Below, piece by piece: positions 13,301 to 52,795 of a stretch of 64,000 bases of DNA. Made by a program: the position numbers and the translations under genes. The notes beneath the pieces were generated by a model, which searched no databases, had not been told where the DNA came from, and worked only from the letters and a program-made list of their open reading frames with translations. How positions within the stretch are numbered: position 1 is the stretch's first letter; each line of letters begins with the position of its first letter. Origin of the DNA: Macrostomum lignano (taxonomy: Eukaryota); NCBI GenBank assembly GCA_002269645.1, contig NIVC01001408.1, positions 113,448 to 177,447 on the forward strand, in the 5' to 3' direction.

Positions 13301-16069
13301 TCAGCGGCCCAGGCTCGATTCCAAGCGCAGTCACATTAATTTCGGACTAAATTGAAATCTCGGCTTGGCTCTGCTCGTGCAATTAACGCCCTTGAGGGAG
13401 GGCCAACCCCCAAGGCACAGTGAAGTGTACATGCCAAAAGATAAATAAAGTTAGGGCCGCTTTACACGCCTGTGTTAGTGTGTGCCTGTACGTATGACTG
13501 CGTATGTATCTGCTGCTCAGGGGAGTCGGCGGAATGGGCAGTAATGCCTCTCGCCGGTTGTGTGACATTGTCGCTTAATTACCCTTTATATTATTCACGG
13601 AAGTTGCACAGGAGTCTGCAGACTCCATGATTACAGATAACTTAAATTTGACAATTGATTGAAGTCTTGAGATCCCAATAATCCTAATCTTTAAAAAAAA
13701 TTGTTAATAATAATTTAAATAAAATATGAATTGCCGAAAATACGGAATTTACATTGAAATTTAGCACCCAGCGTGAATGAAATTTATGGTGTCATGTCTA
13801 TACCAGTAAACACGAAACAAAAAATACACAAACAAGACCTCGCAATTGCTTTCGCAAAGCAGAAATCTGCAGAATTCTTGTTCCAAGTGTCCTCCTTGGT
13901 TCAATCCATTCCCTTGCTTCTTGACCCATTCGAATGATGTCTGTCTCCGTGTCTCTCGGTTCTCTCGACTAGCCCACCACTCACCCCAAACACAACCACC
14001 GGGAATCGCAGCACCAGAGACAGAGAGGGGTTGACCCTCCTCTTCCTCTCTCTCAGTTTCTTTCAACTCTTTCAAGATACACTTGTAGATATGTGTGTAT
14101 GCAGCTTCTAATGTATAGCAATATTGACTCAGTGCAATCAATGAAACACACGTTAAGGCTATAGCGGTACTGTTGTGTCCGAGTGTCTGTACGAGTACAA
14201 ATATTCCCGAGACTTGGTTGGTAATTTAGTAGCTTTAATAAAGGTCTGTATCTCTCTCTCTCTAACCCGTTCTCTTATTTGTCTACTGCAGCAATATTAT
14301 ATTCCGTCTGTGTCAAAGCGCTTAGCACTTGTCTGCTGACTTGGTGCTGTACTGTTGAGAGAAGCGGAGCTTTCGAAGCTGAATATTAGTGGAAATAATA
14401 GAGTTAAATTATGCGATCGGAGATAGCGCCAAATTAGACAATCAAAGGTAGCGCCAAATTAGACAATCAGTGGTGGCGCCAAATTAGAAAATCGGAGGTG
14501 GCGCCAAATTAGAATATCAGAGGTGGCGCCAAATTAAACAATCAAAGGTGGCGCCAAATTAGAATATCAGAGCCTCAGAGGTAGCGCCGAATTAGATTAT
14601 CGGAGGTGGCGCCAAATTAGATTATCAGAGGTGGCGCCAAATTAGATTATCAGAGGTGGCGCCAAATTAGATTATCAGAGGTGGCGCCAAAATTAGATTA
14701 TCAGAGGTGGCGCCAAATTAGATTATTGGATGGAGGTGGCGCCAAATTAGATTATTGGATGGAGGTGGCGCCAAATTAGATTATTAGATGGAGGTGGCGC
14801 CAAATTAGATTATTAGAGGTGGCGCCAAAGTAATCCATCGGAGGTGGCGCCAAATTAGATTATTGGATGGAGGTGGCGCCAAATTAGATTATTAGAGGTG
14901 GCGCCAAAGTAATCCATCGGAGGTGGCGCCAAATTAGATTATTGGATGGAGGTGGCGCCAAATTAGATTATTAGAGGTGGCGCCAAAGTAATCCATCGGA
15001 GGTGGCGCCAAATTAGATTCTTGGATGGAGGTGGCGCCAAATTAAATTATTGGATGGAGGTGGCGCCAAATTAGATTATCAGAGGTGGCGCCAAATTAGA
15101 TTATTGGAGGTGGCGCCAAAGTAATCCATCGGTTGGTGGCGCCAAATTAGATTTTTGGATGGAGGTGGCGCCAAATTAGATTATTGGATGGAGGTGGCGC
15201 CAAATTAGATTATTGGATGGAGGTGGCGCCAAATTAGATTATCAGAGGTTCTGAAGCAGCGTCCAACTGTTCGCAAGGGTTTCTGGGAATTGATTTGAAA
15301 TCCCAACAACCCCGATTAGTCTTGACTGAGCAGCTCTGCTCAGGCGTTGTTTTCACAAGCAAGAAAGAAAAAGAACTCAGTAGCGAGCCCGCTCGTACAA
15401 TTGCTGCACCTCCTTCCTTTTTTCCTGTCTCCAAGAGGGGGGGGGTTTCTCGTTCATCCATTGATTTCGAGATTTCAGCTCGGTGCGGCGCCCGGCCTCC
15501 CCAATTTCCCTCAGCTTTTCTAGCCTTGCAGATTAATCCAATCCATAAATCTCATTTTCTCACCAGACGGCCCAGTTCAGTCTTCTCAAGAATTTTTTGT
15601 CTTTGCTAGGGGGATTAAGAAACGACCCCTTGAAAATCCGTTCGGCCTAGCTAATCTCGTATCGCTTTCGAATTATTTTCTATGAAACTGGCTGATATTT
15701 CTAAGAAATAATATAATTTTCTGGATACACGCTTGTACTGTTTCTGCGCCAGCATTGCTGTGTTACTTGATTTATCTTATTGCTTCATGTGCGTTTTCTC
15801 CTAAATCATTATTTCTACAGGAAGACAAGATTGTTAACAATTTGTCTGAGCGAGGCACCGGCGCCCTTGACAACCGGGTAGTAACCATCTGCTCTGGCAC
15901 CGATTTGGTTAATATTGTCTACACGCACATGGTGGCCCAGGATGAGAAAACTGCCATGGTGAGTTTCAGTGATTGATTGGCTCTTGACTTGACAGACAGA
16001 CAGACAGACAGACAGACTGACAGACAGGCAGACAGGCAGACAGACAGACAGACAGACAGACAGACAGGC

Positions 16070-16106
<37 letters not shown>

Positions 16107-19100
16107 GGCAGACAGACAGACAGAGACGCAAAGACAAGCGTAAGGGCAGATAGGTTTTTAATTTAAATGATAAATTGATATATTTACCTGCATGTAATCT
16201 ATTTATTTCTAACGCAGCCACAGCTAGTTATTTTGGGTTCCCCCAGCTGTAGACAATAATTTTTGGGTCTGCAATAAAGTGCAAGAGCATTCTTTTACCA
16301 TTTCTGTTATCTGCTGCTATGCCGTGCGCTTGATACAGGCTGACAATTGACTGAGATATCACAGTTTTTTAGCTGTACTGGACAAGCCCTCTAATTCACA
16401 AGTAGGTTGGAAATATTCAGCTGCTATCTTTGACATACAAGTTAGTTCGTCCGTTTGCCAATAGATTTACAACTGTTTGTGGCTATACAACCTGTCTGCG
16501 CCTGTCAGATCTTACAGGTGTCGGCGTATGTTGATTTCACACCAACTTTTCTTAGTTTAAACTCTCAAATCATTCAGATGGGGTTACTTCAAGTGTATGA
16601 AATTTCCCCAAGGGACTATTTTAAAGCTATAACTCTTGTATTATTCATTGTTTTGTCACATTCATTCTGTGGTTCATGCTTTTAAATAATTTCTGCTGTC
16701 TAACACCCTCTATCTAACACCGTCTATCTAACACCCTCTATCTAACACCCTCTATGTAACACCCTCTATCTAGCACACTTAATCTATTACCCTCTATCTA
16801 ACACACTTTATCTATTGTATTTCCTTCTATCTATCACACGATATATTACCCTCTATTTAGCACTCTCTATCCAACACCCTCTATCTAACACGCTCTATCT
16901 GTCTACCTACCCTCTATCTTCCAACCCTCTGTCTACCGACCCTCTATCTGCCAACCCTCAATTTACGTACCCTCTATCTTCCAACCCTCTGTCTACCGAC
17001 CCTCTATCTGCCAAACCTCAATTTACGTACCCTCTATCTGCCAACCCTCTGTCTACCTACCCTCTATCTGCCAACCCTCTATCTACGTACCCTCTATCTG
17101 CCAACCGTCTGTCTACCTACCCTCTATCTTCCAACCCTCTGTCTACCTACCCTCTATCTTCCAACCCTCTGTCTACCTACCCTCTATCTGCCAACCCTCT
17201 GTCTACCTACCCTCTATCTGCCAACCCTCTATCTACGTACCCTCTATCTGCCAACCGTCTGTCTACCTACCCTCTATCTTCCAACCCTCTGTCTACCTAC
17301 CCTCTATCTTCCAACCCTCTGTCTACCTACCCTCTATCTGCCAACCCTCTGTCTACCTACCCTCTATCTTCCAACCCTCTGTCTACCTACCCTCTATCTG
17401 CCAACCGTCTGTCTACCTACCCTCTATCTGCCGACCCTGTCTACCTACCCTCTATCTGCCAACCGTCTGTCTACCTACCCTCTATCTGCCAACCCTCTAT
17501 CTACCTACCCTCTATCTACCTACCCTCTATCTGCCAACCCTCTGTCTACCTACCCTCTATCTACCTACCCTCAATTTACCTACCCTCTATCTGCCAACCC
17601 TCCGTCTACCTACCCTCAATTTACCTACCCTCTATCTGCCAACCCTCCGTCTACCTACCCTCTATCTACCTACCCTCTATCTACGTACCCTCTATCTGCC
17701 AACCGTCTGTCTACCTACCCTCTATCTTCCAACCCTCTGTCTACCTACCCTCTATCTTCCAACCCTCTGTCTACCTACCCTCTATCTGCCAACCCTCTGT
17801 CTACCGACCCTCTATCTGCCAACCCTCAATTTACGTACCCTCTATCTTCCAACCCTCTGTCTACCGACCCTCTATCTGCCAACCCTCAATTTACGTACCC
17901 TCTATCTGCCAACCCTCTGTCTACCTACCCTCTATCTGCCAACCCTCTATCTACGTACCCTCTATCTGCCAACCGTCTGTCTACCTACCCTCTATCTTCC
18001 AACCCTCTGTCTACCTACCCTCTATCTGCCAACCCTCTGTCTACCTACCCTCTATCTTCCAACCCTCTGTCTACCTACCCTCTATCTGCCAACCGTCTGT
18101 CTACCTACCCTCTATCTGCCGACCCTGTCTACCTACCCTCTATCTGCCAACCGTCTGTCTACCTACCCTCTATCTGCCAACCCTCTATCTACCTACCCTC
18201 TATCTACCTACCCTCTATCTGCCAACCCTCTGTCTACCTACCCTCTATCTACCTACCCTCAATTTACCTACCCTCTATCTGCCAACCCTCCGTCTACCTA
18301 CCCTCTATCTACCTACCCTCTATCTACCTACCCTCTATCTACCTACCCTCTATCTGCCAACCGTCTGTCTACCTACCCTCTATCTACCTACCCTCAATTT
18401 ACCTACCCTCTATCTGCCAACCCTCCGTCTACCTACCCTCTATCTACCTACCCTCTATCTATCTACCATCTATCTTCCAACCCTCTGTCTACCTACCCTC
18501 TATCTGCCAACCATCTGTCTACCTACCATCTATCTTCCAACCCTCTGTCTACCTACCCTCTATCTGCCAACCATCTGTCTACCTACCCTCTATCTTCCAA
18601 CCCTCTGTCTACCTACCCTCTATCTTCCAACCCTCTGTCTACCTACCCTCTATCTTCCAACCCTCTGTCTACCTACCCTCTATCTGCCAGCCGTCTGTCT
18701 ACCTACCATCTATCTGCCAACCGTCTGTCTACCTACCCTCTATCTGCCGACCCTGTATACCTACCCTCTATCTGCCAACCGTCTGTCTACCTACCCTCTA
18801 TCTGCCAACCCTCTATCTACCTACCCTCTGTCTACCTACCCTCTATCTACCTACCGTCTATCTACCTACCCTCTATCTGCCAACCCTCTATCTACCTACC
18901 CTCTATCTACCTACCCTCTATCTACCTACCCTCTATCTGCCAACCCTCTGTTTTCCTATCTCTATTTAGCGTCATATATACAAACAATACGCATAGTACA
19001 TATAGATGGGTTTAATGCGACAGTGGTTGAGCATGTAATACATGCGGTAGCGCAGGCGCATTCCAGGGGCCGTCATGCAACGAGTTTCAGTTCCTTTCGG

Positions 19101-19222
19101 TTGCTAGCTAAGCGTGAAATAAGAAGAGCTCGCTCGGTCTTCGGCTAACCCCCCCCCCTTCTCCTCTCCAATCCTCCACTCCAACTGATGGCGAGTGGGA
19201 GGCTGAACCCTGGCCGAAACGA

Positions 19223-19318
<96 letters not shown>

Positions 19319-22300
19319 TAATCTATTTATAGTTGGCGCCCCGTCACCGCTGCCTCTGCTGCTGCCCTCTTTTATTTTTCTGCGGCTAGCTAACCGGTCT
19401 TGGTTAACTGAACTCAATTCTTTCCTTCCTCTCTTTCTCTCTCTCAGATCGTCAGTTCCCTAGAAGTGCCGATTTGAGGCGGCAGGGGGTTGGGGGGGCT
19501 ACTAACGCATACCAATTCGATTTGATCTGCTCTTCTTCGCTTCATTTTGGCCTTCCCGCCTCGACCTCGAGGATTCAGTGCGGGCCTCTCGCTGATCTTG
19601 TTGCTTTTTTAATGCGCTCTCCCTGACTTTTATCCAGTTTCATTGCCAGCTTGCCTGCGTGTCTTCTGTGCGTGCCTGTATTTTATGACATCTCCTCTTC
19701 AGTCTCCTGTCCTCTGTCTACGTAGTCTAGGTTGTCAGAAAAGTTCTGTGTATATTGTAATAACTTGAGAACGATAAACAGTAGAAACATGAAAAGTTAC
19801 AAATGTCTTCCTTAACATCTATTCACTCAAAGTATGAGCCCTCAGCTTCAATGCACTTCTCCCAACGCCGCACCAGCCCGTCAATGCCTGCAGTCATGCC
19901 ATTGTTCGTCACGGCGGCAATGCCAGCCTTGTAGGCCCGATTCACGTCTTCCTCTGCGCTGAAACGCTGGGCCCGCATCGACTCCTTGATGCGAGGGAAG
20001 AGGAAAAAGTCGCATGGACTCAAATCCGGGGAATAAGGCGGATGTGGAAGAATTTCCCATCCCCACGACTCTTTCGTAGCCAGCACGCTTTGCTTTCGGT
20101 GCGGGGCTGCGTTGTCGTGAAGCAGAATCGGCCCAGCCGCGTGAAGCGCAGGCCTTTTGTCCCGAATGGCACGCTGAACTTTCACCAGAACCGACAGGTA
20201 GAAATCACCATTGACCGTCTGCCCCACTGGCACAGGCTGATCGAACAACAGACCCTCCCGGTCGAAGAAAGTCACGTGGATGACCTTTAACTGACCGATG
20301 CTCCGGATGGCTTTTTGAGGTCGCGGAGAATCTGGTCTGCACCATTTGGCACTCTGCCGCTTCAACTCCGCCTCCCAAGAATGCGCCCAGGTTTCGTCGC
20401 AGGCAACGATCCTTTGCAGGAACGCCATGCCCTCCCGCCGACACCGCTGCAGGTTGGATGCGCACATGGCGACCCGCCGAGCCCGCTGATCGTCAGTGAG
20501 CAGATGCGGCACCCACTTGGCACAGACCTTGCGCATCCCGAGGTCCTCGGTCAGGATCTTGTGGACTGAGTCGTGGGACACCCCTATGGCATCAGCCAGC
20601 TGCCTGGTGGTCAGTCTCCGGTCCTGCAGCACGGCTGCCTCCACCTGACTCACCAGGCTGTCAGTCCGAGCACTCGTTGGTCGTCCACTGCGTGGCTTGT
20701 CGTCGAGGTCTTCTTTGCCGTTGCAAATGGCAATAGCCCAGCGGCGAATCGTCTCATAAGATGGGCAAAATTCTCCTATGGTCTGCCGCATTTCTTCAAA
20801 AATCTCGGTTGCTGAACGCCCCTGAAGGACATGAAACTTGATGATCGCTGGATTTTCGCGTTTAGAAAAACTCTCCCGCGGGACGGAATTTTTTATATAT
20901 GTATATATCTATGGCTAAAACCCCACCTCTTCAGCTATTCATAGAGCTGAGCTATTCTCTAATACACAGAACTTTTCTGACAACCCTCATACTCTCTCTT
21001 CATCCGCTATCTACCCTCCACCATCCTGTGTCTACTCTCTCCATTCACTGTCTACCCTCCACCATCCTGTGTCTACTCTCTCCATCCACTGTCTACCCTC
21101 CACCATCCTGTGTCTACTCTCTCCATCTACTGTCTACCCTCCACCATCCTGTGTCTACTCTCTCCATTCACTGTCTACCCTCCACCATCCTGTGTCTACT
21201 CTCTCCATTCACTGTCTACCCTCCACCATCCTGTGTCTACTCTCTCCATCCACTGTCTACCCTCCACCATCCTGTGTCTACTCTCTCCATCCACTGTCTA
21301 CCCTCCACCATCCTGTGTCTACTCTCTCCATCCACTGTCTACCCTCCACCATCCTGTGTCTACTCTCTCCATTCACTGTCTACCCTCCACCATCCTGTGT
21401 CTACTCTCTCCATCCACTGTCTACCCTCCACCATCCTGTGTCTACTCTCTCCATCTACTGTCTACCCTCCACCATCCTGTGTCTACTCTCTCCATTCACT
21501 GTCTACCCTCCACCATCCTGTGTCTACTCTCTCCATTCACTGTCTACCCTCCACCATCCTGTGTCTACTCTCTCCATCCACTGTCTACCCTCCACCATCC
21601 TGTGTCTACTCTCTCCATCTACTGTCTACCCTCCACCATCCTGTGTCTACTCTCTCCTTTCACTGTCTACCCTCCACCATCCTGTGTCTACTCTCTCCAT
21701 CCACTGTCTACCCTCCACCATCCTGTGTCTACTCTCTCCATCTACTGTCTACCCTCCACCATCCTGTGTCTACTCTCTCCATTCACTGTCTACCCTCCAC
21801 CATCCTGTGTCTACTCTCTCCATTCACTGTCTACCCTCCACCATCCTGTGTCTACTCTCTCCATCCACTGTCTACCCTCCACCATCCTGTGTCTACTCTC
21901 TCCATCTACTGTCTACCCTCCACCATCCTGTGTCTACTCTCTCCATTCACTGTCTACCCTCCACCATCCTGTGTCTACTCTCTCCATCCACTGTCTACCC
22001 TCCACCATCCTGTGTCTACTCTCTCCATCCACTGTCTACCCTCCACCATCCTGTGTCTACTCTCTCCATTCACTGTCTACCCTCCACCATCCTGTGTCTA
22101 CTCTCTCCATTCACTGTCTACCCTCCACCATCCTGTGTCTACTCTCTCCATCCACTGTCTACCCTCCACCATCCTGTGTCTACTCTCTCCATCTACTGTC
22201 TACCCTCCACCATCCTGTGTCTACTCTCTCCATTCACTGTCTACCCTCCACCATCCTGTGTCTACTCTCTCCATCCACTGTCTACCCTCCACCATCCTGT

Positions 22301-25300
22301 GTCTACTCTCTCCATCCACTGTCTACCCTCCACCATCCTGTGTCTACTCTCCCATTCTGTCTTCCGTCTGCTTTTCTCCACGCCTTACTATCTTTTTAAT
22401 AAATATTATTGAACATAGTTATTAATTGTTTATATTTTTTTTTATTTTCCGCAGGCCTGGATTCAAGATCTGAGGCCGTTAACTCACAATACCAAGGCTA
22501 GCAATGTTTGTCCGATGACACAGCTAAGAAAACAGTAAGATATTACTAACTATAATTATCATAATACATTATAATTTATTAAATAATAATCGTCATATTT
22601 CTTCAGCTGGATGAAACTGTGCTTCTCAGTTAACGCCAACAACTGCATCCCAGTTCGCGTGATCAGCAAGACCTTCGCTTCCGGAAAAACTGAAAAAATC
22701 ATCTTTCAAACTTTGAAAGATCTCGGATTGCCTTCTGGAAAGGTAATTAGTCAGGCACAAAATTAGGCAATCAATGAGTCGCAAAATTAGTGAGGTAGGG
22801 AGGTAAAAATTAGGCAATTATTGAGCCGCCGAATTAGGCAATTAGTGAAACGCCAAATTAGGCAATTAGGGAAGTGTTAAATTAGGCCAATTAATGAGTC
22901 GCCGAATTAGGCAATTAGTGAGTCGCCAAATTAGGCAATTAGTGAGACGCTAAATTAGTCAATTCGTAAAGCGCAAAATTAAAGCATCGAAAGAAACTCT
23001 TCAAAGAAAGTTTAAAAAATAATAAAAAGCCGTTTTTTATATATATCCTCATCGTTGCAATTGCAGAATGACGAGATAATTCCGGCCACTTTCACATTCG
23101 ACAAGTTCTACGAATTGTACCATCGAATCTGTCCCAGGCAGGACATCGAAGACCTGTTCAATGAATTGTGCACCGACAACTCTAGCGTGATCACTCAGGA
23201 CAAGATGGTCGAATTTCTCAACGTTACTCAGCGCGATCCGAGGCTTAACGAAATTCTTTATCCTTTTGCTAATAAATTAACGATTGAGAATATACTCAAG
23301 CAGTACGAGCCTAGCGAAGAGAATAGAGAGAATCGTGAGTGATCGGGTGCTTTGTGTCTCTCTGGACTGCTGAATGTGTCTCTATGGTGCTAAATGTGTC
23401 TATATGGACCTAAATGTGTCTATATGGACTTAAATGTGTCTATATGGACTTAAATGTGTCTATATGGACTTAAATGTGTCTCTATGGACTTAAATGTGTC
23501 TCTATGGACCTAAATGTGTCTCTATGGACCTAAATGTGTCTATATGGACCTAAATGTGTCTCTATGGACCTAAATGTATCTATATGAACCTAAATGTATC
23601 TATATGAACCTAAATGTATCTATATGAACCTAAATGTATCTATATGAACCTAAATGTATCTATATGAGCCTAAATGTGTCTCTGTGGATCTAAATGTATC
23701 TATATGAACCTAAATTTGTCTATATGGACCTAAATGTGTCTCTATGGATCTAAATGTATCTATATGGACCTAAATGTGTCTCTATAGATCTAAATGTATC
23801 TATATGGACCTAAATGTGTCTCTATAGATCTAAATGTATCTATATGGACCTAAATGTGTCTCTATAGATCTAAATGCATCTATATGGACCTAAATGTGGC
23901 TCGATTGTTTTAAATTTTTCTATTGCTCCAAATGTGTCTCTATGGCAGGAATTGTGTCTCTATGAAGCGAAATGTGTATGTATGGTGCTAAACGTGTCTC
24001 TAGGCAACAATAAGTTTCTCCGATTCGTAAAATGTGTCCTCAGAGCAGCAATTGTCTCTAGCTAGAGCACTAAATGTGTCCGTATATGCTAAGACGCCTC
24101 CCAACCCCTACTCGCATGCAGGCCAAATTAGCATAGCGGGTTTCTATCGCTATCTGATGTCGGACGACAATGCTCCTGTATTCCTGGACAAACTGGAGAT
24201 TCATCACGACATGGACCAGCCACTATCGCACTACTACATTAATAGTTCGCACAATACCTATCTGATTGGTAGACAGTTTGGCGGTAAAAGCTCGGTAGAA
24301 ATGTACCGGCAAGTTCTATTAGCCGGCTGTCGTTGCATTGAATTGGATTGCTGGGACGGCAAAGATCCCGATCAGGAGCCAATTATCACTCACGGCAAAG
24401 CCATGTGCACCGACATCTTATTTAAGGTGATTATTTTCTGTCATTTCTACTTGTGAGTAGTGTACTAAGAATTTTAGAGTGCTTTCTACTGAAATATAAC
24501 ATTTTTAGTTAAATTCTCAGTTCTACTTATTTAGTAGTGTGTAATGAAATATTCAGCAATTATCTTACATTTTTCGTCATTTTCACTTATTGGTAGTGCT
24601 CTCAGAATTTAAAGTAATTTTTGCTAAAATATTATTTTTAATAAAATTCTCAGCTCTACTTATTTTGTAGTAGCTTTACTAAAAGTTTAGTCATTTTCTT
24701 ACATTTTTCTGCCATTTTTACTTATTAGTAGTGTACTAAGATTTTAAAAGTATTTTCTACCTTTCAAATTAAAAAAAATATTTTTTTCTTGTTTTTTGCT
24801 ATCATTTCGACTTCAGTAGTGTAGTGCAAATTTTATGCATTTTTTCAAATTTTTATTTCAGGATGTGATCTACGCTATTCGAGACACAGCATTTGTTACA
24901 TCCGCTTGGCCCGTCATTTTATCATTCGAGAATCATTGCTCGTAAGATGACGATTAATTAATATGAAACAATCTTAATAGGGATTGTCCGTTTCTTTTAA
25001 TTATCTTCTTCAATTTTTTACAGCAAAGCTCAGCAATACAAGCTGGCCAAGTATTGCGAAGACATCCTTGGAGACTTCTTGTTGAGTAAACCGCTGGAGA
25101 AATACCCTGTAAGTAGAGATTAATAGAAATTATTTGCACTGTTATATAGTTAACTATTTATTGAAAGAATAATATAACAAAAATTGAATTCCATTTTTAG
25201 CTTGAGCCTGGAATGCCGCTGCCGCCGCCCGAGAAGCTAAAGTGCAAAATTCTGATTAAAAATAAGCGGCTCAAGTCGGATGTGGAAAAACGTGAGATAC

Positions 25301-28300
25301 TAAAATCTTTTTCACCATTCCTGATGAGAATTCTCAATTCTAATAAAATCCCCAATTCTAATAAAAATCCCTATTCCTAATAGAAATCCCCATTCCTAAT
25401 AGAAATCCCCATTCCTAATAGAAATCCCCAATTCCTAATAGAAATCCCAAATTCCTAATAGAAATCCCATTCCTAATAGAAATCCCCAATTCCTAATAGA
25501 AATCCCAAATTCCTAATAGAAATCCCATTCCTAATAGAAATCCCCAATTCCTAATAGAAATCCCCAATTCCTAATAGAAATCCCCAATTCCTAATAGAAA
25601 TCCCATTCCTAATAGAAATCCCCAATTCCTAATAGAAATCCCAAATTCCTAATAGAAATCCCTAATTCTAATAGAAATCCCCATTCCTAATAGAAATCCC
25701 TAATTCTAATAGAAATCCCCAATTCCTAATAGAAATCCCTAATTCTAATAGAAATCCCTAATTCTAATAGAAATCCCCATTCCTAATAGAAATCCCCATT
25801 CCTAATAGAAATCCCCATTCCTAATAGAAATCCCCAATTCTAATAAAAATCCCCATTCCTAATAGAAATCCCCAATTCTAATAAAAATCCCTATTCCTAA
25901 TAGAAATCCCCAATTCTAATAAAAATCCCTATTCCTAATAGAAATCCCCAATTCCTAATAGAAATCCCCAATTCCTAATAGAAATCCCTAATTCTAATAG
26001 AAATCCCCATTCCTAATAGAAATCCCCAATTCTAATAAAAATCCCTATTCCTAATAGAAATCCCCAATTCCTAATAGAAATCCCCAATTCCTAATAGAAA
26101 TCCCATTCCTAATAGAAATCCCCAATTCCTAATAGAAATCCCCAATTCCTAATAGAAATCCCTAATTCTAATAGAAATCCCCAATTCCTAATAGAATTCC
26201 CTTATTCTAATAGAAATCCCTAATTCTAATAGAAATCCCCATTCCTAATAGAAATCCCCATTCCTAATAGAAATCCCCATTCCTAATAGAAATTCTAATT
26301 ACTAATAGAAATCCGCATTTCTAGTAGAAATTCCCATTCCTAAAAAAATCCCCACTCCTAATAAAACCCCCTTTTGTAAAGAATCCCATATTTTAAAAAA
26401 ATCCCTTTCCTAATCCGCAGACCAGCTCGAGCTGTTCCTCAAAGGCCAAGCCGTCATAGACGAAGTCGAAGTACCCGAAGATCCCCAAGTCATTGTGGAC
26501 GGCGAGGCCGGCCCCCTCAGCGACCTGGAGCCGACGCCACTCACCGGTCAGGTGGACACCGATCCCCATCCGGAGGGTGGCGCCCCTGCCGCCGCCCAGC
26601 CGAGCAAGCCCGCACTGGCGGCCACAGTTTCCCAGGGCTCCGCAGCGTCCGTGACGGCCAATTCGCCGACTTCCCCAACCGACGCCGCCGCTGTACCTGC
26701 GAGTTCTCTAACTAATTTGACCGCGGCAACTTCGACGGCTGTGGCTACTGCTAATAATGGCAGCGCCGTGCCCACCGATGTTGGCATCGACGAGGTGCCG
26801 CATGCTAAACCGAAGGTTTGTCTTGATTTGGCTTCTAGCTCTTTGGCCAGATTCTCAACTGTTTCATGAATTTAGTTAACATTCTCAACTCAATGGGGAT
26901 TTCATCATGCCATCTGCACTGCTACCTGTTCTCCGATTCTACTGCTGTCCTCTATCCTCCTCCCCCACACCTCATCCTCCCCCACCCCCTCATATACCCT
27001 ACCCCCTCATCCTCCCCCACCCCTCATCCTCCCCCACATCTCATCATCCCCCACACCTCATCCTCCCCACCCCTCATCCTCCCCCACATCTCATCCTCCC
27101 CACACCTCATCCTCCCCCACCCCTCATCCTCCCCCACCCCTCATCCTCACCCACCCCTCATCCTCCCCGACCCTCATCCTCCCCATACCTCATCCTCCCC
27201 TACCCCTCATCCTCCCGACCCCTCATCCTCCCCCACACCTCATCCTCCCCCACACCTCATCCTCACCCACCCTCATCCTCCCCACACCTTATCCTCCCCT
27301 ACCCCTCATCCTCCCCGACCCCTCATCCTCCCCACACCTCATCCTCACCCACATCTCATCCTCCCCCACACCTCATCCTCCCCCACCCTCATCCTCCCCA
27401 CCCCTCATCCTCACCCACCCCTCATCCTCCCCACACCTCATCCTCCCCTACCCCTCATCCTCCCCGACCCTCATCCTCCCCGACCCCTCATCCTCCCCAC
27501 CCCTCATACTCTCCCACATCCCATCCTCCCCACACCTCATCCTCCCCCACATCTCATCCTCCCCCACACCTCATCCTCCCCCACACCTCATCCTCCCCAC
27601 ACCTCATCCTCCCCCACACCTCATCATTTAATTTAAATCCTGGCCTCGCATTGCAGGGCACCCTAAGCGCAGAGGAAGAGCAGGGCCTACTAGCCCAGTA
27701 CCATTACACCGGAGCGACCACTAATATTCATCCGGTGCTGTCGGCCATGGTTAATTATGCTCAACCTGTCAAATTTCAAGGCTTTGATATCGCCGAAGGT
27801 GAGCTCAAACTTACAATAGCATAGATCTAAGTCGTTAATTGGTTGTTCTTTTTTTAAATTAATTTTTGTTATACCGTAGTTTTAAAATGAGATTTACTAA
27901 TTAGAGTTATACGAGACAATGCACATTCTTAAAAGTATTTGTCAGAAAACGGACTGATAAACACTAAGCCTTATTCATTTCTCCAAGACGTCACGACTCA
28001 CAATTGTCTACATCTGAAGAATCGCAAAAATTATGCATTGAAAATCAGTCACATTGAGAATGGCCTCAAACCAGTCATTGTGAATGGCCTCAAACCAGTC
28101 ATTGTGAATGGCCTCAAACCAGTCATTGAGAATGGCCTCAAATCAGTCATTGAGAATGGCCTCAAACCAGTCATTGAGAATGGCCTCAAATCAGTCATTG
28201 AGAATGGCCTCAAATCAGTCATTGAGAATGGCCTCAAATCAGTCATTGAGAATGGCCTCAAATCAGTCATTGAGAATGGCCTCAAACCAGTCATTGAGAA

Positions 28301-31300
28301 TGGCCTCAAATCAGTCATTGAGAATGGCCTCAAATCAGTCATTTAGAATAGCCTCAAATCAGTCATTGAGAATGGCCTCAAATCAGTCATTGAGAATGGC
28401 CTCAAATCAGTCATTGAGAATGGCCTCAAATCAGTCATTGAGAATGGCCTCAAATCAGTCATTGAGAATGGCCTCAAATCAGTCATTGAGAAGGGCCTCA
28501 AATCAGTCATTGAGAATGGCCTCAAACCAGTCATTGAAAATTGCCTTAAATTAGCCATTAAGAATGACCTCAAATCAGTCATTGAGAGTGGCCTCAAACC
28601 AGTCATTGAGAATGGCCTCAAATCAGTCATTGAGAATGGCCTCAAATCAGTCATGGAGAATGGCCTCAAATTAACCTTGAGAATGGCCTCAAATCAGTCA
28701 TTGAGAATGGCCTCAAACCAGTCATTGAGAATGGCCTCAAATCAGTCATTGAAAATGGCCTCAAATCAGTCATTGAGAATGGCCTCAAATCAGTCATTGA
28801 GAATGGCCTCAAATCAGTCATGGAGAATGGCCTCAAATTAACCTTGAGAATGGCCTCAAATCAGTCATTGAGAATGGCCTCAAACCAGTCATTGAGAATG
28901 GCCTCAAATCAGTCATTGAGAATGGCCTCAAATCAGTCATTGAGAATGGCCTCAAATCAGTCATTGAGAATGGCCTCAAATCAGTCATTGAGAATGGCCT
29001 CAAATCAGTCATTGAGAATGGCCTCAAATCAGTCATGGAGAATGGCCTCAAATTAACCTTGAGAATGGCCTCAAATCAGTCATTGAGAATGGCCTCAAAT
29101 CAGTCATTGAGAATGGCCTCAAATCAGTCATGGAGAATGGCCTCAAATTAACCTTGAGAATGGCCTCAAATCAGTCATTGAGAATGGCCTCAAACCAGTC
29201 ATTGAGAATGGCCTCAAATCAGTCATTGAGAATGGCCTCAAATCAGTCATTTAGAATAGCCTCAAATCAGTCATTGAGAATGGCCTCAAATTAGCCTTGA
29301 GAATGGCCTCAAATTAGCCTTGAGAATGGCCTCAAATTAGCCTTGAGAATGGCCTCAAATTAGCCTTGAGAATGGCCTCAAATTAGCCTTGAGAATGGCC
29401 TCAAATTAGCCATTGAGAATGGCCTCAAATTAGCCATTGAGAATGACCTCAAATTAGCCATTGAGAATGACCTCAAATAGCCCATATTGCTGTTTAACAC
29501 TACTGCTTCATTCTGAGCGAGTAGCGCACTGCAATGAGCATTCCTAACAAACAATTTCAGAGGAAAACATTCATTACCACATGTCCTCATATTCCGAGAC
29601 TGTTGGTCTTGGCTACCTCAGAAATGAGGCTATTGAGTTTGTCAAGTATCCTTTATAAGATTCCAGTCTATTTTAATTGAACCAAAAGGTTTATAAACGC
29701 AGTTTATCTTTCGGCTTCAGTATTGGTGTTGTTGCTATGTAGCTCCTATTTAATAATAGTTCCTCATTTCCTCGACTTGCATATGTGGTATTTACGTACG
29801 AATTGCAATTAGCATGAATGCATATAATATAGAAAATATTTGGTTTGAAGTTTGCTATTATTGCTTCTATAAAATTGTTAAGCATGAATTTCTTAATAAG
29901 TCTTAATTGAAAGGCAAAGTAGGTCAGGCTATAAAATATTGGTGAATTTTTTTTTACTTTGCACGAGTGTTTTGTTTTAATGTTTTGCCTTGTCACCTTT
30001 GTTGAATATTTTTCCTATTCTCAGCTGTGTTGTGAATCTAGAATTTAGAAATCTTTATTTGAATATATATTTGAGTTGCACCACTGTTCAGACCCCCCTG
30101 TCTCCACTATGCTAATGGGCTTTTCCGCCCCTGTCTCCACTATGCTAATGGGCTTTTCCGCCCCTGTCTCCACTATGCTAATGGGGTTTTCCGCCCCTGT
30201 CTCCACTATGCTAATGGGCTTTTCTGCCCCTGTCTCCACTATGCTAATGCGGTTTTCCGCCCCTGTCTCCACTATGCTAATGGGGTTTTCCGCCCCTGTC
30301 TCCACTATGCTAATGGGGTTTTCCGCCCCTGTCTCCACTATGCTAATGCGGTTTTCCGCCCCTGTCTCCATTATGCTAATAAGGGTTATCCGGCCCCCTA
30401 TCACCACTATTTCATTTGGGTTTTCCGCCCCTGTCTCTCCACTATGTTAATGGGGTTATCCGCCCCCCTATCACCACTATTTCATTTGGGTTTTCCGCCC
30501 CTGTCTCCACTATGTTAATGGGGTTATCCGGCCCCTATCACCACTATTTAATTTGGGTTTTCCGCCCCTGTCTCCACTATGTTAATGGGGTTATCCGCCC
30601 CCTATCACCACTATTTCATTTGGGTTTTCCGCCCCTGTCTCTCCACTATGTTAATGGGGTTATCCGGCCCCTATCACCACTATTTAATTTGGGTTTTCCG
30701 CCCCTGTCTCTCCACTATGTTAATGGGGTTATCCGGCCCCTATCACCACTATTCTATCTGGGATTTTCTGCCCCTCAAGCCCGTGAGCCATTATCTTCTT
30801 GTAAATTATATCGGCTTTCCCTTTCGGTATTGGTGCTATTCAAGCATTAATGTTGTCAGTAAAAGCATCGAAACCTGCTTTCCTTTATCCTCATTTATAA
30901 CCTGCACGTTCCTCCAATATAATAATTTATTCTATTTTAGAAGTGAACAAGCACTTTCACATGTCCTCATTCAACGAGGGCGTTGCGCTTGGCTACATCA
31001 AAAAATCTGTAACAGATTTCGTTGCGTATCCTTTTATTTTATAGTGTGCTTGCTTGCTGTGCTAGTATCTACTAGTAGTGTAGTTTGCGTGTTTTGATTA
31101 ACCTTCCTTATTTACTGCATTTAGAATTGTGTTGTAAAATCATTAGTTCAAAAATTCTGCTAATTTAGCTACTGCAAGTAGCAAGCATTGGTTTTTATTT
31201 TCCTTAACCAAACAATCAATGAAACTCTGTAAACTATAATAAAGCTACAACAAGCGCCAGATGAGTCGAATCTATCCCAGAGGCAATCGAGTGGATTCCA

Positions 31301-34300
31301 GCAATTTTATGCCGCAAATTTTCTGGAACGCCGGCTGCCAAATGGTTGCGTTAAATTTTCAAACGCCCGATTTAGCTATGCAGCTGAATCAGGGCAAATT
31401 TGAGTATAACGGCAATTGCGGGTGAGTTTTAACAATGCTGCTTTTGCTATTAGTAGCGGTAGTAGTACTACTAGTAGTAGCAGTAGTTTGTAGTAGTAGT
31501 AGTAGCAGTAGTTTTAGTACTAGTAGTAGCAGTAGTAGTTTTAGTAGTAGTAGTAAAAGAAGTAGTAAATATTAGAAGTAGAAATAGTAGTAGTAAGTAG
31601 TATCAGTAGTAGTAGTTGGTAGCAGTAGTTTGTAGTAGCAGGGGTTATAGCCTACTAGTAAGGGGTTGTAGCCTAGTGGTTAAAGCGTCGGACTCACGAC
31701 TTGAAGGTCGGAGGTTCGATTCTCGATCCCACTGAAACAGTTTCTGTCCTTGAGCAAGACACTTAACTCTACATTGCTTCAGTTCACCCAGCTGTAAAAT
31801 GGGTGCCAGCATTAGCTGGGGTAATTGAGGGTGTGTGTGTGGCGACCCTTGGACTGAACAGCCGTACGCAGCTTTCAGATGCGCCGCGCAATAGCTGCGG
31901 CTGAGCTGTCGCTTGCACATCTGGCCATTAGGGCAGGTGTAATCAATTACTGGGTGATTGGTAAAAATCTGGACATTTTTATTTGTTTTAGCAAGACAAC
32001 AATAAACAAATTGAACACATGTCTTTTAACTTGGATTAAGTTCAATATATAAGGGATTGTCTGGCTCATTGCCAAACGGCTCCGACACCATTAGCCCGAG
32101 CTCGGCGAATCCCGGACTTGACATTGGTCATCATCTCCTGTACACAGTGCAGATCCACCTGGCGGAGGCAGTAGCGAATGCGATTTTCCAGCTGTTCCAG
32201 ACTGTCCGTCGTCCAATTGTGATGGTAAACCTTTTGCTTCAACATCCCCCAGAAGTTCTCAATTGGTCGCAGCTGTGGTACATTGGGAGGATTGAGCTCC
32301 TTGCTGACAAAATTGACACCTTCCTCTTCAAATGTGTCAATGACGTCACGAGCATAGTGACAGCTCGCCAGGTCAGGCCAGAACAGGTAGTTGCCGTCAG
32401 CATGCTGTTCCTTAATAAATGGCAATAGACGCTTGTGAATGCACTCTCTTATGTAGATCTCTTTGTTCATTGAGCTGCCGTGGCAGAAGAAGACCTTGGA
32501 CATGCCCTTCTTGCTGATGGCCAGCCAGACCAAGACTTTGGCCTCAAATTTCTTGCTGGGTGAACACCTAACCTCATCAGGTGCATCACCTCGAGCTGTT
32601 GCATAATAGAACCTGTTACCAGGGATGACATTGGATGACAGAGAGAAGTACGATTCATCGTCCATGACAATGTCCAGTCCGCCGTCATCTCCTGCCAGCA
32701 CAGCACGGTAGAGCCTGTCAATCCTCACACGCTGGCGCTCTTTCTGCTCAAACGACACAAATGGCACTTTTTCTTTCTTGTATGCACTTAGTCCCTGCTT
32801 CTTGAGAATCTCGTTGACGTACGGCTGGCTGATGTCATATTTGCGTGCAATTTCGCGCTGGGACAGACCCGTCCTGGCATCATTTGACATCTTCTCCATC
32901 AAAGTGGCAGTGACCTTGGTAGCTGGTCGTCCTGACCCCTCCTTCCGTAGCACAGAATCTTCTCCAGTTGCTGAGTAGCGATCCAGAATTCCATAAATGG
33001 TTGATCTTGGGACACCAAGCTCAGCAAAATATTTTGCGATTGCATTGTTGCTCAGCCCAGGGTGCTCAATTTTATATTGTACAACCAGTTTACGCCGCTG
33101 CTCTTCATTTAGAGACTGCATCTCAGACGTGACGGGGCAAACAAGTGAAAAAAACAACTTAAGTTGTGAGGAAGACCCCCAGTATTGCTCAAAAGCATCA
33201 GCTCAATAAATTTGCCTCGTTAAATTTTGTCTATGGCAAAAACTAACCATGTCCAGATTTTTACCAATCACCCAGTATCAATTATTCAAAATTATTGTAG
33301 TAGTAGTAGTAGTAGTAGTAGCAGTAGTAGCAGTAGTAGTAGCAGTAGTAGTAGCAGTAGTAGTAGCAGTAGTAGTAGTAGTAGTAGCAGTAGTAGTAGT
33401 AGTAGTAGCAGTAGTAGCAGTAGTAGTAGCAGTAGTAGTAGTAGCAGTAGTAGTAGTAGTAGTAGCAGTAGCAGTAGTAGTAGCAGTAGTAGTAGCAGTA
33501 GCAGTAGTAGTAGCAGTAGTAGTAGTAGAAGCAGTAGTAGTAGTAGAAGCAGTAGTAGTAGTAGAAGCAGTAGTAGTAGCAGTAGCAGTAGTAGTAGTAG
33601 CACACGAATAAAATTTCATCCATCCATCCCGTTCCAACTGTACAATAAAGCTACCTACTCAAGCCGGACTTTATGCGCCGAGCTGACCGTCATTTCGACC
33701 CGTTCTCGGAGAGTCCAGTCGATGGCGTGATCGCCGCCAGCTGCTCGGTCCAGATCCTGTCCGGCCAGTTCTTGTCGGATCGGAAGATCGGCACCTACGT
33801 CGAGGTGGACATGTACGGCCTACCCACCGACACTATCAGGCGAGAATTTCGAACTCGAATAGTGCCCGGCAACGGGCTTAATCCGGTCTACAACGAAGAG
33901 CCATTCGTGTTTCGTAAAATCGTGCTACCGGATTTGGCTGTTATTCGTATCGGAGTTTACGAGGAGACTGGCAAACTGATTGGTCAGAGGATTCTGCCGC
34001 TTGACGGCCTGTGCGCCGGCTACCGCCACATCAGCCTGCGCACTGAGGGCAACTTCCCACTGTCTTTACCCACTATTTTCTGTCGAATCGATTTGAAAAC
34101 CTACGTGCCCGAAGGCTTGGCCGCTTTTGTGGACGCCCTGAGCGATCCCAGAGCCTTCCTGTCCAAGGCCGAGAAGAGAGAGCGACAGATGAAGGATATG
34201 GGCATTGGTGAGGGAATGGCTCTCCTTGAGGATCTCCTCCCTTAACCCTTGAGAATATCCCCCCCCACAAACCATTGAGAATCCCCCCTAAACCCTTGAG

Positions 34301-45350: not shown

Positions 45351-45661
45351 TCGCATGTATAACTAGGTGTCCTGTGCATACTTTAGCTTTATGCAGAGTA
45401 GCTGACCACGCCCTTTACAGCCTGAGCAGTGAGCCTGGGGAGGAGGCCAATCTACAGCTCGTAGGTTGTTGGGAGCGATCACGCAGTCCCTTTGAAGACT
45501 AGACGAGGTAGAGGAAGACGAGAGGACAGATTTCGGGCGTAACGGGATGGGGAAGAGCAGACTGTTGATTAGGGCGTCTCCGAAAGCTCCAATTTCGGGG
45601 ATTAACGAACTGGCCGGGGATGGAACAAGATGAGACTCATCTGGGAAATGAAATATGTCTT

Positions 45662-46498
<837 letters not shown>

Positions 46499-47179
46499 AT
46501 ATCAATCGCTGCCCTACAGACAGTCGCACATGCATGCAGTGCAAGAGTCATTCAGTTTTGCCATGCAGCTTCGCAACCCGCTGTGCTATTCTGGCAATAG
46601 CGAGTTGAATTCCATGAAAAAAGGTGTACACTGCAGAGAGAAGGAGACAGGGCAGTCTGCAAGGCGGTTATTAAGTGTTTGCTGCAGTGTGTATAATAAA
46701 TACGTGTTTGCTGAGCAAGAAAAAAGTGAGAGTTTGATAAAAAAAGTATGCTGCGTGCGGTCGAGTTTGAGCCGTGAGTTGCAACTCATCTCCAATCCAT
46801 TGGCGCCAAAAAGCCAGCAAGCATTCATTATTTGAATAGAAACAAATTCATATTGTATTTTGGCGTGTTGAGTCTGCATAGACGAAAGCTAAAATGGGTT
46901 AACACAATGTCTATTATATTATTGTGTGCGTGTATGGGTGACTATTGCTGTCGCTCAGCACCTGGTGTGTCAAATTAATGCATCTTATGCAGCTGCATAA
47001 AGGTGCGGCCTTGTAATTACCACAAGACAACTGCCTGAATGTGAAGAATGCATGCATGCTATGCACTGTGTTTTAGAGATTTGTACGAATTTGCGTCAGT
47101 TTTATTTTGTAATGCAGATTTAGACTTGTGTTTATGAGGCGCTTTGCTTTCAAATCGCCGCCATAAAAAGTTAGAGAGA

Positions 47180-47975
47180 GGCGCCCACCATGAGACAGGG
47201 GGCGCCCACCAAGAGACAGGAGCGCCCACCAAGAGACAGGGGCACCCCACCAAGGGACAGGAGCGCCCACCAAGGGACAGGAGCGCCCACCAAAGAACAG
47301 GAGCGCCCACCAAGGGACAGGAGCGCCCACCAAGGACAGGAGCGCCCTCCAAGGGACAGGAGCGCCCACCAAGGGACAGGAGCGCCCTCCAAGGGACAGG
47401 AGCGCCCACCAAGGGACAGGAGCGCCCTCCAAGGGACAGGAGCGCCCTCCAAGGGACAGGAGCGCCCACCAAGGGACAGGAGCGCCCACCAAGGGACAGG
47501 AGCGCCCACCAAGGGACAGGAGCGCCCACCAAGGACAGGAGCGCCCTCCAAGGGACAGGAGCGCCCACCAAGGGACAGGAGCGCCCACCAAGGGACAGGA
47601 GCGCCCACCAAGGGACAGGAGCGCCCACCAAGGGACAGGAGCGCCCTCCAAGGGACAGGAGCGCCCACCAAGGGACAGGAGCGCCCTCCAAGGGACAGGA
47701 GCGCCCACCAAGGGACAGGAGCGCCCACCAAGGGACAGGAGCGCCCACCAAGGGACAGGAGCGCCCACCAAGGACAGGAGCGCCCTCCAAGGGACAGGAG
47801 CGCCCACCAAGGACAGGAGCGCCCTCCAAGGGACAGGAGCGCCCACCAAGGGACAGGAGCGCCCTCCAAGGGACAGGAGCGCCCTCCAAGGGACAGGAGC
47901 GCCCACCAAGGGACAGGAGCGCCCACCAAGGACAGGAGCGCCCTCCAAGGGACAGGAGCGCCCACCAAGAGAGAC
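47180..47975. repeat. 20-bp GC-rich minisatellite
   Basis: Unit aagggacaggagcgcccacc. Confidence 0.93.
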
Positions 47976-49384
47976 AAATATTGGTTCCCCTAAAGGTTGC
48001 GGCCGCTCTTGTCAGCTGTCCGTGGCAGTCGATTTGGCATTTTTGTCAAATAATGTGCATTAAATTACATAAATTTGAAATCCCATCAAACGATAAGAGA
48101 GCTGGTAGTTGGGTCAGTTGGATAAATTGAAACTTATCAGCCGGTTGAATAATTGTAACAAACGATAAAAAAACTTTCTAATTATTAGAGAAATCTGATC
48201 CTGATTAAAGATTCTTAATTATATTCATCAAATTCAAGCTTCAGGTGCTCAGGTGGGATTAACCATTTTTTGATAGAAATTATTTGGTTTTTTAATCTTG
48301 CATACACAACATGGGCAGTCCGCCCTAAAGAAGTCGGAATTAAACTTAAAAAATCATTTTCAACTCTCTCTGAACCAAAGTACATTCATACAGTTACTAG
48401 ACACGAACAGGAATTAGCAATCAGTTTAATTAACTTCAATCAAAGCTCAAACGCGCTGAACCCGAGCCACTCCACTCACTGTATGCAGCATTGCTCTCGA
48501 TGGGATGTTTTTCTGCAAATGAAATGAAATCTGCCTTCCCAATTCTTCCCGCACCTGCAAACGCGCGCGAATCCATGCAGCCTCCTCCTCTCATCATCAT
48601 CAACGGATTGCATGGCAGTTCCGCTCGCTCAGTCAGCCTCTTTTTGTAAAACCGAGAGAGACGAGAGAGAGAGAGAAGAGAGGCAGGTACTGGGGATGCG
48701 CAATCGAATGTAGCCAGTGTACTCGAGGACTGGACCAAGGAGCCCCAAAATCAAAACCTGGAGTGATTCATTTCTAGACACTTCAGTCAGCCGCTAGTTG
48801 TCTAAAAAACAGGCTCTGTCCGAGCTCCAGGTTTTAGGTCCGGGCCTCCTTGGACGCTGAGGGCAGCAACACAGCAGCCAGTCAACCCCACCTCAGAGAG
48901 TGATGAGGCAGGTGGGGAAAGAGGTTTGCTCTCAGTATAAATTCAGTTCCAGCTTACATCCGATCTCGGCGACAGAGGAAATTGTTAATAGTTGTTGGAA
49001 CAATCGAAATATATATATGTAGAGTTGTAAAATTTCAAAGGTAAGCTGTAATTTTACTGTTGTGTGTTTGCACTTCTAACAATCGAAATTGCACAGACCG
49101 TTGGTGTTTCAACTGTTGGATAGAGCGTTGGTTGAAATTATTAATAATATTTTAATCAGCAGTTGAACCACTGACGCGTCTGAATTCGATAATCTGCGAG
49201 TTTTTTTGGTACAAACTGTTCTTTATATACTCGAGTTGGAAATTTTCCCTGATTGCAGTGTTGAAAAAATTTAGCTTAAATTTAATCACCTTTCAATTAT
49301 AGACTGAGGGGTGATCTTCTGAAAAACAATGCTCTATTATATATATTCCTTCGAAGTATATAGTATACGGTTGAGTAGAAAAGG

Positions 49385-51365: not shown

Positions 51366-51807
51366 GTGGGGCTGAGGAGTGGCCATGGCCATCGCTCAGG
51401 AATGATAGCAAAGTATTTGACAATACCAGTTAAATGAAGTTAGTATACAATAGTACGGGAAAAGTACACAGCGGCTAGCAACAGCAATAATTAAAAGTAC
51501 AAACAAGCAGATAAAACAGGTTTAAGCAGAGACGGGCAGCACCAAACCAGCAGGCACGATGAGGGCACAGAGGAGGAAGAAACACAGTTGTAATAAATTC
51601 TAAAATAAACAAATTGAAAAATGCTACAAGTATGAAAGCAAGACACTAAGCATTCGGCCGCAAGTACCTTTTGATAAAAATTGCTTTGGAATATTCTCGC
51701 TTTAGGTATTGGGAATGGATTAATTAGGTGACACCAGACAACCTAATTGCCTCTAGGAGCAGATGACTATCTGAAATGTTTTATTATTACTAAGATAGAT
51801 GCTTCAT

Positions 51808-52795
51808 AAATCTCAGGATCGGGTTTGATAATCTTATGAACGAGTTTGATAATCTCAGGATCGGGTTTGATAATCTTATGAACGAGTTTGATAATCTCAG
51901 GATCGGGTTTGATAATCTTATGAACGAGTTTGATAATCTCAGGATCGGGTTTGATAATCTTATGAACGAGTTTGATAATCTCAGGATCGGGTTTGATAAT
52001 CTTATGAACGAGTTTGATAATCTCAGGATCGGGTTTGATAATCTTATGAACGAGTTTGATAATCTCAGGATCGGGTTTGATAATCTTATGAACGAGTTTG
52101 ATAATCTCAGGATCGGGTTTGATAATCTTATGAACGAGTTTGATAATCTCAGGATCGGGTTTGATAATCTTATGAACGAGTTTGATAATCTCAGGATCGG
52201 GTTTGATAATCTTATGAACGAGTTTGATAATCTCAGGATCGGGTTTGATAATCTTATGAACGAGTTTGATAATCTCAGGATCGGGTTTATTGATAATCTT
52301 ATGAAGAGTCTGATAATCTCAGGATCGGGTTTGATAATCTTACGATCGGGATTGGTAACCTTATGAACAGATTTGATAATCTCACGATCGGGTTAGATAA
52401 TCTTACGATCAGATGGGATTATCTCATGATCCATGTTGAATAATCTCATGATTGAGTTTGATAATCTCATTATCAGGTTGAATAGTCTCACGATTGGGTT
52501 TGATAATCACATGATCGGGTTGGATAATCTCATGATTAGATTGGATAATCTCGGGTTAGGTAATCTCACGATCAGATTGTATAATCTCATGATTAGATTG
52601 GATAATCTCGGGTTAAGTAATCTCACGAACAGATTGTATAATCTCATGATCAGATTGTATAATCTTATGATCAGATTGGATAATCTTACGATCAGATTGG
52701 ATAATCTTATGATCAGATTGGATAACTTTACGATCAGATTAGATAATCTCACGATCGGGTTTGATAATCTCATGATCAGATTAGATAATCTCGCT
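51808..52795. repeat. 21/42-bp minisatellite
   Basis: Dimer gataatcttatgaacgagtttgataatctcaggatcgggttt, degenerating to 21-bp variants. Confidence 0.92.

Follow-up and report, generated by a model that had tools for sequence, protein, structure and literature searches.

The stretch of DNA analysed here (the window) comprises 64,000 nucleotides (nt) of Macrostomum lignano, contig NIVC01001408.1 of assembly GCA_002269645.1, positions 113,448 to 177,447 of the forward strand. It contains a gene for a phospholipase C of the PLC-beta4/NorpA type, Mlig023445g1, in which an exon of the catalytic Y box is present in two tandem, diverged versions, 14a and 14b. Mapping of the 1295-residue protein P0241 (BOX15_Mlig023445g1) onto the window gave 20 coding exons between 4357 and 41134, in agreement with the exon numbering adopted in an earlier, sequence-only reading of this DNA. 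Placing either 14a or 14b between exons 13 and 15 yields an open frame of 728 amino acids across exons 7-16. In protein searches the top match of this spliced model was M. lignano BOX15_Mlig025183g1 (99% identity), the matches from this species forming a cluster of three GenBank models and several UniProt entries, and flatworm and mollusc proteins named 'PLC beta-4' ranked next (64-69% identity). Since the model is identical to P0241 at 728 of 728 residues, the window is the Mlig023445g1 locus. Precomputed Pfam assignments for P0121 and the genes of the locus (PF17787, PF22631, PF09279, PF00388, PF00387 and PF08703) give the PH, EF-hand, X box, Y box and PLC-beta C-terminal domains of a PI-PLC beta, while PF00168 (C2) is given for close homologs and not for the M. 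lignano models; PLC-beta3 structures match the M. lignano protein with E ~1e-51.

Exon 13, in which the X-Y linker ends and the Y box begins, lies at 27657-27798 (phase 0 to 1, exact match to P0241; the exons, introns and splice signals described here are all on the forward strand) and ends in a U2-type donor at 27799-27807 (GTGAGCTCA; GCCGAAG/GTGAGC, the slash marking the splice site). It is followed by a U2-type intron of 1762 nt (27799-29560), with a branch-like CTAAC and tttcag at its acceptor, and by exon 14a at 29561-29645, the canonical or type A version, with 85 nt, phase 1 to 2, acceptor caatttcag/, 3' end TTTGTCAA/GTATCCTTTA and a peptide that starts with E and finishes with N. The donor of 14a, at 29646-29654, is the U12-type GTATCCTTT. 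Between the two copies lies a hybrid intron of 1295 nt (29646-30940) whose 5' splice site is U12-type and whose 3' end is U2-type, and within which no U12 branch motif was found at a usable distance when up to three mismatches were allowed. Exon 14b at 30941-31025, the fast-evolving type B version, has the same length and phases (85 nt, phase 1 to 2), the acceptor ctattttag/, the 3' end TTCGTTGC/GTATCCTTTT and a peptide running from E to A, and its donor at 31026-31034 is again GTATCCTTT. A probable U12-type intron of 219 nt (31026-31244) then contains the branch-point motif TTCCTTAAC at 31200-31208, the sole one available to both donors, and leads to exon 15 at 31245-31421 (Y box, phase 2 to 2, acceptor ataataaag/, U2 donor GG/GTGAGT). 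With 14a chosen, the U12 intron would extend over 29646-31244 (1599 nt) and contain 14b; with 14b chosen, the U2 intron removed would measure 3142 nt and contain 14a.

The two exons are identical at 53 of 85 nt and at 14 of 28 amino acids (tblastn E = 2e-7 within the window), and the whole corresponds to the JNK-type layout: homologous exons of equal length and phase, U2 acceptors, U12 donors and a single downstream U12 branch site. Direct reading of the sequence confirmed the positions first given for 14a, 14b and the branch motif, together with the description of tandem exons that both carry U12 donors and share one regional U12 branch site; the guess at a flatworm was right as well. The contrast with the rest of the gene, likewise claimed at that stage, holds in all 18 of the other donors checked through the P0241 mapping, which are U2-type (GTGAGC, GTAAGC twice, GTGAGT, GTAAGA, GTAATT, GTGATT, GTAAGT, GTGAGA, GTTTGT, GTGAGG, GTTAGC and others). 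On both strands of the 64 kilobases, GTATCCTTT occurs twice, at the ends of 14a and 14b; of TTCCTTAAC the window has two copies as well, at 19808 and at 31200, the second of which is alone between 27 and 32 kilobases. Motif counts as such were set aside as insufficient evidence, since two copies of GTATCCTTT are not a significant excess (about 0.8 expected, and 21 of 100 shuffles reached two). The evidence is the placement of the motifs, with the donors on homologous exon boundaries and the branch motif inside the following 219-nt intron. Upstream of 14a and of 14b, the best 9-mers resembling TTCCTTAAC have three mismatches each.

This arrangement points, in our view with good probability, to a mutually exclusive exon pair that arose by tandem duplication of an exon situated between a U2 intron and an ancient U12 intron. 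Each copy would have inherited a U2-type acceptor together with a U12-type donor, the sole U12 branch site and acceptor standing before exon 15. The productive routes would then be 13-(U2)-14a-(U12)-15 or 13-(U2)-14b-(U12)-15, and two other outcomes should be disfavoured, namely the joining of 14a to 14b, which would combine a U12 donor with a U2 acceptor, and the skipping of both (13-15), which would combine a U2 donor with a U12 acceptor. If one transcript had 13 joined to 14a and also 14b joined to 15, it would be left with the hybrid intron; the choice would therefore have to be coordinated across each exon, presumably via exon definition linking the U2 3' site to the U12 5' site, and would probably be settled as the two U2 acceptors and the two U12 donors compete. 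Because 85 is not a multiple of 3, skipping shifts the reading frame and so does double inclusion, as had been noted from the start, and the frameshifted 14a-14b or 13-15 transcripts should go to nonsense-mediated decay. From the signals and from the analogy with JNK we infer that the incompatibility of the two spliceosomes is the operative lock. That analogy, already drawn in the sequence-only reading, proved to be exact, the same order of introns having been described for JNK2: a U2 intron, a hybrid intron (U12 5' splice site, U2 3' splice site) that 'cannot be properly spliced' and a U12 intron (Chang et al. 2007, PMC1874599).

Comparison with spiralian homologues, which had been proposed as a check, revealed the same wiring at the orthologous loci of four other genomes, so that it is now seen in three phyla. 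These are the genomes of the cestode Echinococcus granulosus (exon A at 15646-15730 and exon B at 15854-15938 of locus L007), the gastropods Elysia marginata (L002) and Biomphalaria (L003), and the early-branching annelid Owenia fusiformis (L008). All four share a U2 donor on exon 13 and two exons of 85 nt in the order A, B, whose donors read GTATCC with the exception of GTATCT on Echinococcus B and whose acceptors lack a U12 branch motif; one (T)CCTTAAC lies 8-13 nt upstream of exon 15. The annotated isoforms within a species carry A or B, are otherwise of equal length and never contain both, in nine spiralian taxa (Lineus longissimus, Haliotis, Biomphalaria glabrata, Pomacea canaliculata, Octopus, Owenia, Babylonia, scallops and Schistosoma haematobium), all of this at the level of annotation, the evidence for nemerteans consisting of protein isoforms only. 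Sister trematodes are annotated differently, A being given for Opisthorchis viverrini and B for O. felineus. The M. lignano exon 14a groups with flatworm type A exons (79% identity to Echinococcus A), and 14b is best matched by the B-like exon of Tubulanus (66%), then by that of Chaetopterus (62%); VALG(L/Y)IKK is common to 14b and the Schistosoma B exon, with ALGLIK in Echinococcus B. The pair is conserved in at least three animal phyla, and probably in a fourth.

Some lineages show variations of this scheme. The scallop B exon (P0301, P0304, P0306, P0308) is five codons longer, its 100 nt (1 mod 3) keeping the phase. Exon 15 forms one piece in M. lignano and Apostichopus, and an extra intron follows MPQ in Elysia, Biomphalaria, Owenia, Echinococcus and Paragonimus. 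In the draft locus of Paragonimus kellicotti (L001 6362-10051) only a B-type exon stands between exons 13 and 15; neither an A-type exon nor a GTATC[CT]T motif is present in its 3.4-kilobase intron, which has no assembly gaps, the donor is GTATCT, and no U12 branch motif was recognisable within three mismatches. The switch may have been lost there with the intron under conversion, or the assembly may be at fault.

The distribution of the U12 intron is wider than that of the exon pair. The sea cucumber Apostichopus has in PLCB4 a single exon with donor GTATCCTTA and branch motif ACCTTAAC 14 nt before the next exon, and the corresponding intron of rodent (Neotoma) PLCB1, unchanged in position and phase, has the donor GTATCCTTG and ACTTAAC 13 nt from its 3' splice site. 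For carp PLCB4, a gene call with a FVKYP read-through implies GTATCC, as evidence for the donor only. The orthologous intron was U12-type in six of six other animals read across (Echinococcus, Elysia, Biomphalaria, Owenia, Apostichopus and, for PLCB1, Neotoma), and the duplication was seen only in Spiralia, the exon being single in deuterostomes. On this comparison, the U12 intron is older than the exon duplication and ancestral at its position. A wealth of minor introns has been described in the PLC family (PMC6865273), and Schistosoma is reported to possess minor introns (PMC10639083).

Both exon types bear the marks of constraint. The proportions of nonsynonymous (pN) and synonymous (pS) differences between M. 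lignano and Echinococcus are pN 0.15 and pS 0.91 for A, and pN 0.35 and pS 0.72 for B; those between Elysia and Biomphalaria are pN 0.05 and pS 0.88 for A, and pN 0.13 and pS 0.73 for B. Judged by these values, purifying selection acts on A and B alike. The two types differ in tempo, A being slow (73% mean interspecies identity) and B fast, with 48% identity among B exons versus 45% between B and A. B exons are about as unlike each other as they are unlike A, and on this ground flatworms, molluscs, annelids and nemerteans could have acquired their A/B pairs by independent duplications; the 29 residues of the exon, compared through identity statistics, are too few to decide between a single and a multiple origin. 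We consider independent origins unlikely, however, given that the order with A upstream and B downstream, the 85-nt length, the phase and the splice layout are the same in five genomes, that A is slow and B fast everywhere, and that a start motif with A/E in first position is common to the B exons of Macrostomum and scallops and the B-like exons of Tubulanus and Chaetopterus. Because order, length, phase and signal layout are constant and this start motif is shared, one duplication in the spiralian ancestor is the most economical and most likely reading.

A number of observations weigh against a pair locked by spliceosome incompatibility in M. lignano. The duplication automatically leaves each copy with a U12 donor, and lineages with a single exon retain the U12 intron as well, so that conservation of the signals alone is no proof that they enforce exclusivity. 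The 85-nt length would by itself remove the products of double inclusion and skipping through the frameshift. Moreover, the M. lignano gene models covering the exon pair all contain 14b and none contains 14a. An Rfam scan for minor-spliceosome small nuclear RNAs gave none in the 64-kilobase window, and no paper on the minor spliceosome in Macrostomum was found in the literature. Finally, the placement of the branch motif upstream of exon 15 in the sequence-only reading was right as to side and unusual as to distance, since TTCCTTAAC lies 37 nt from the 3' splice site, compared with 8-14 nt in five other species. U12 branch sites are usually found about 10-20 nt from the 3' splice site (consensus /RTATCCTT for the donor and TCCTTRAY for the branch site). 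A spacing of about 10-20 nt was reportedly found optimal for U12 introns by Dietrich et al. in 2001, and the 37 nt of M. lignano fall outside it. The donor and the branch motif are nonetheless perfect matches to the consensus, no AG intervenes between TTCCTTAAC and the 3' splice site, the first AG downstream being the annotated one, and no better motif was found closer to the exon 15 acceptor.

Exclusivity could alternatively come mainly from the frameshift and nonsense-mediated decay, from exon-definition competition or from RNA structure, the mixture of U2 and U12 signals being passive inheritance. The exon length, read directly from the sequence, is in line with this, as are the retention of the U12 intron in single-exon lineages, which shows that the switch is not required for it, and the drift of neodermatan B donors to GTATCT. 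Yet U12 donors, and acceptors without a U12 branch motif, have been kept in five genomes from three phyla, and the JNK2 hybrid intron is regarded as unspliceable and thought to drive exclusivity (PMC1874599). As for RNA structure, a search of the introns for docking/selector pairing returned two weak inverted repeats (13-15 nt, 80-85% complementary) that were judged to be chance, and no convincing pairing. We consequently rate exclusivity by these other means as improbable, and favour the incompatibility of the U2 and U12 machineries.

The use of the two exons in M. lignano itself deserves separate consideration. Four M. lignano models reach across the exon pair (P0121, P0241, P0242 and P0243), and each of them contains 14b and lacks 14a. 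This reverses the earlier view of 14b as the copy in need of proof: 14b appears to be the default form in this species, and what we infer of 14a use in M. lignano comes from its conservation only. One isoform per gene model is usual, and several parasite gene models, as those of M. lignano, show only one of the two isoforms. A disused 14a, with 14b constitutive and the switch no longer working in this species, would fit the presence of 14b alone in the four models. It would also fit the lack of any 14a-bearing M. lignano fragment among the matches of a 14b-isoform query, which gave nothing above 75% identity at full coverage where such a fragment would match at about 90%, although the matches of this query (135 amino acids) were all of 234 amino acids or fewer and the annotated M. 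lignano protein was itself missed. Nevertheless, 14a shares 79% of its amino acids with the cestode type A exon at saturated synonymous sites (pN 0.15, pS 0.91), a selection signature that argues strongly for a working exon in the Macrostomum lineage. Its length, open frame and acceptor are intact, as is its perfect GTATCCTTT donor, and the exon does not differ between the three paralogous loci; a dead exon would be expected to decay over such a time. A relic status of 14a seems to us very unlikely.

The PLC-beta locus as a whole is present in three near-identical M. lignano copies on separate contigs (Mlig023445g1, which is the window, Mlig025183g1 and Mlig025183g2), whose proteins are 3-7 residues apart over the compared stretches; these could be recent duplicates or divergent haplotypes. 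Both exons are found in the second and third loci too (L005 22883-27723 and L006 25957-30463), the exon sequences being 100% identical across the three. Flanks there, including both GTATCCTTT donors and TTCCTTAAC, are 96.7-100% identical over the aligned segments, and around exons 14a, 14b and 15 the identity is 98.3-100%. A duplication of the exon pair by assembly or haplotype error, which had already been thought improbable for 14b, is ruled out by the three loci together with the conservation across phyla.

Exon 14 aligns approximately to residues 611-639 of PLC-beta3 and 562-590 of PLC-beta2, for which structures have been solved. The motif (H/N)MSS(F/Y)xE is kept in every A and B exon, and the differences between A and B fall mostly in the approximately 18 residues that follow it. 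We take the second serine of this motif to be the counterpart of PLC-delta1 Ser522, with which the alignment offsets are consistent; Ser522 is reportedly a residue of the PLC-delta1 structure determined by Essen et al. in 1996. The residues after the motif presumably form a surface helix in the Y half of the TIM barrel. The initial claim that the switch swaps part of the active-site barrel was correct in that the exon holds the conserved MSS motif, and overstated in that this motif is present in both exons and it is the later residues that differ. Because the active-site motif occurs in both, the two isoforms should share their chemistry, and they may differ in regulation or in partner binding. 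The peptides implicated in the contact of PLC-beta2 with G-beta-gamma, which we place at about 564-593 of that protein, would coincide with exon 14. Peptide mapping has placed a G-beta-gamma contact in a helix of the PLC-beta2 Y subdomain (Sankaran 1998; Bonacci 2005; both cited in PMC13626650), a site whose role later cryo-electron microscopy work disputes. That the exchange of exon 14 touches a G-beta-gamma contact is put forward as a hypothesis and not as a finding.

Repetitive DNA is prominent in and around the gene. Both introns flanking 14a are largely satellite, the 13-14a intron consisting mostly of a 24-nt satellite at 28042-29478 (about 60 repeats, 93% matches) and the hybrid intron holding a 33-nt satellite at 30095-30775 (about 20 repeats). 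Intron 15 is partly filled by (TAG)n and (GTA)n arrays (31451-31638 and 33297-33600), and its segment 31662-31731 (forward strand) weakly matches the Rfam model of transfer RNA (tRNA) with 33.6 bits against a threshold of 29; ARAGORN found no tRNA in the whole window, and the match may be a pseudogene or a repeat derived from a tRNA. Exon 15 (ctgtaaactataataaag/CTAC, 31225-31248) and exon 16 (ctgtacaataaag/CTAC, 33635-33654) have similar acceptors, both without a proximal polypyrimidine tract, the donor of intron 15 being nonetheless plain U2. Further long tandem arrays, extremely abundant within and around the gene and giving rise to long but spurious open reading frames in each of the three frames, occupy 4600-6000, 6400-7130, 9100-9830, 16750-19150, 20870-22420, 26880-27630, 45600-46600, 47140-48130, 51790-52800 and 53780-54360.

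Exclusive exon choice has a precedent within the same gene family. The mutually exclusive exon 4 of Drosophila norpA, reportedly described by Kim et al. in 1995, is an N-terminal exon and not part of the Y box, and its choice is not known to involve a U12 intron. The closest parallel in wiring is that of the vertebrate JNK/MAPK8-10 exons 6a/6b (Letunic et al. 2002; Chang et al. 2007), which have the same duplicated pair, the same intron order and the same proposed origin, the JNK2 exon having been suggested to be duplicated together with parts of its flanking introns (PMC1874599). In JNK, as would be the case here, one exon is included. The PLC-beta pair, for which splicing is predicted from the sequence, differs in gene family, being part of the catalytic Y box of a PI-PLC beta, and in clade; it is probably much older, being spiralian-wide rather than vertebrate, and the branch motif of M. 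lignano lies unusually far from the splice site. For JNK2, Nova and the polypyrimidine tract have been implicated as regulators. Mapk9 exons 7/7a and Tmem87b exons 11/11a are mutually exclusive around a minor intron in a tissue-specific manner (Olthof et al. 2019, PMC6717393), but mouse Tmem87b exon 11a is a cryptic exon inside the minor intron, whereas both PLC-beta exons are ancient conserved paralogues. The mechanism is not new: the pair joins the known and rare JNK-type class, of which it is an unusually old member. We found no description of this exon pair, nor of a U12-based switch in any PLC, in the open literature, and the sequence-only reading had known of none for PLC-beta; the isoforms themselves already stand in RefSeq and GenBank for many spiralians, unremarked.

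A bolder reading, which we regard as possible rather than probable, is a single pan-spiralian, U12-dependent switch in PLC-beta4/NorpA, of Cambrian or older age, which would exchange the Y-domain segment matching the putative G-beta-gamma contact of PLC-beta2 and thereby provide cell-type-specific regulation by G proteins, for instance in rhabdomeric photoreceptors as opposed to other cells. If this were true, it would be the oldest known U2/U12 hybrid-intron lock and would help to explain why this minor intron resisted conversion to the U2 type. Documented exclusive pairs around minor introns are few, those surfacing here being JNK/MAPK8-10 and Tmem87b, all of them in vertebrates, while the PLC-beta pair lies in a different and central signalling enzyme, with both copies under selection. 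Its conservation in several phyla and the selection on both copies therefore make it an independent and very old test case for the way in which the two spliceosomes cooperate through exon definition, for the question of whether minor introns are retained because of regulatory jobs, and for the role that the Y-domain segment following the active-site serine may play in the regulation of PLC-beta.

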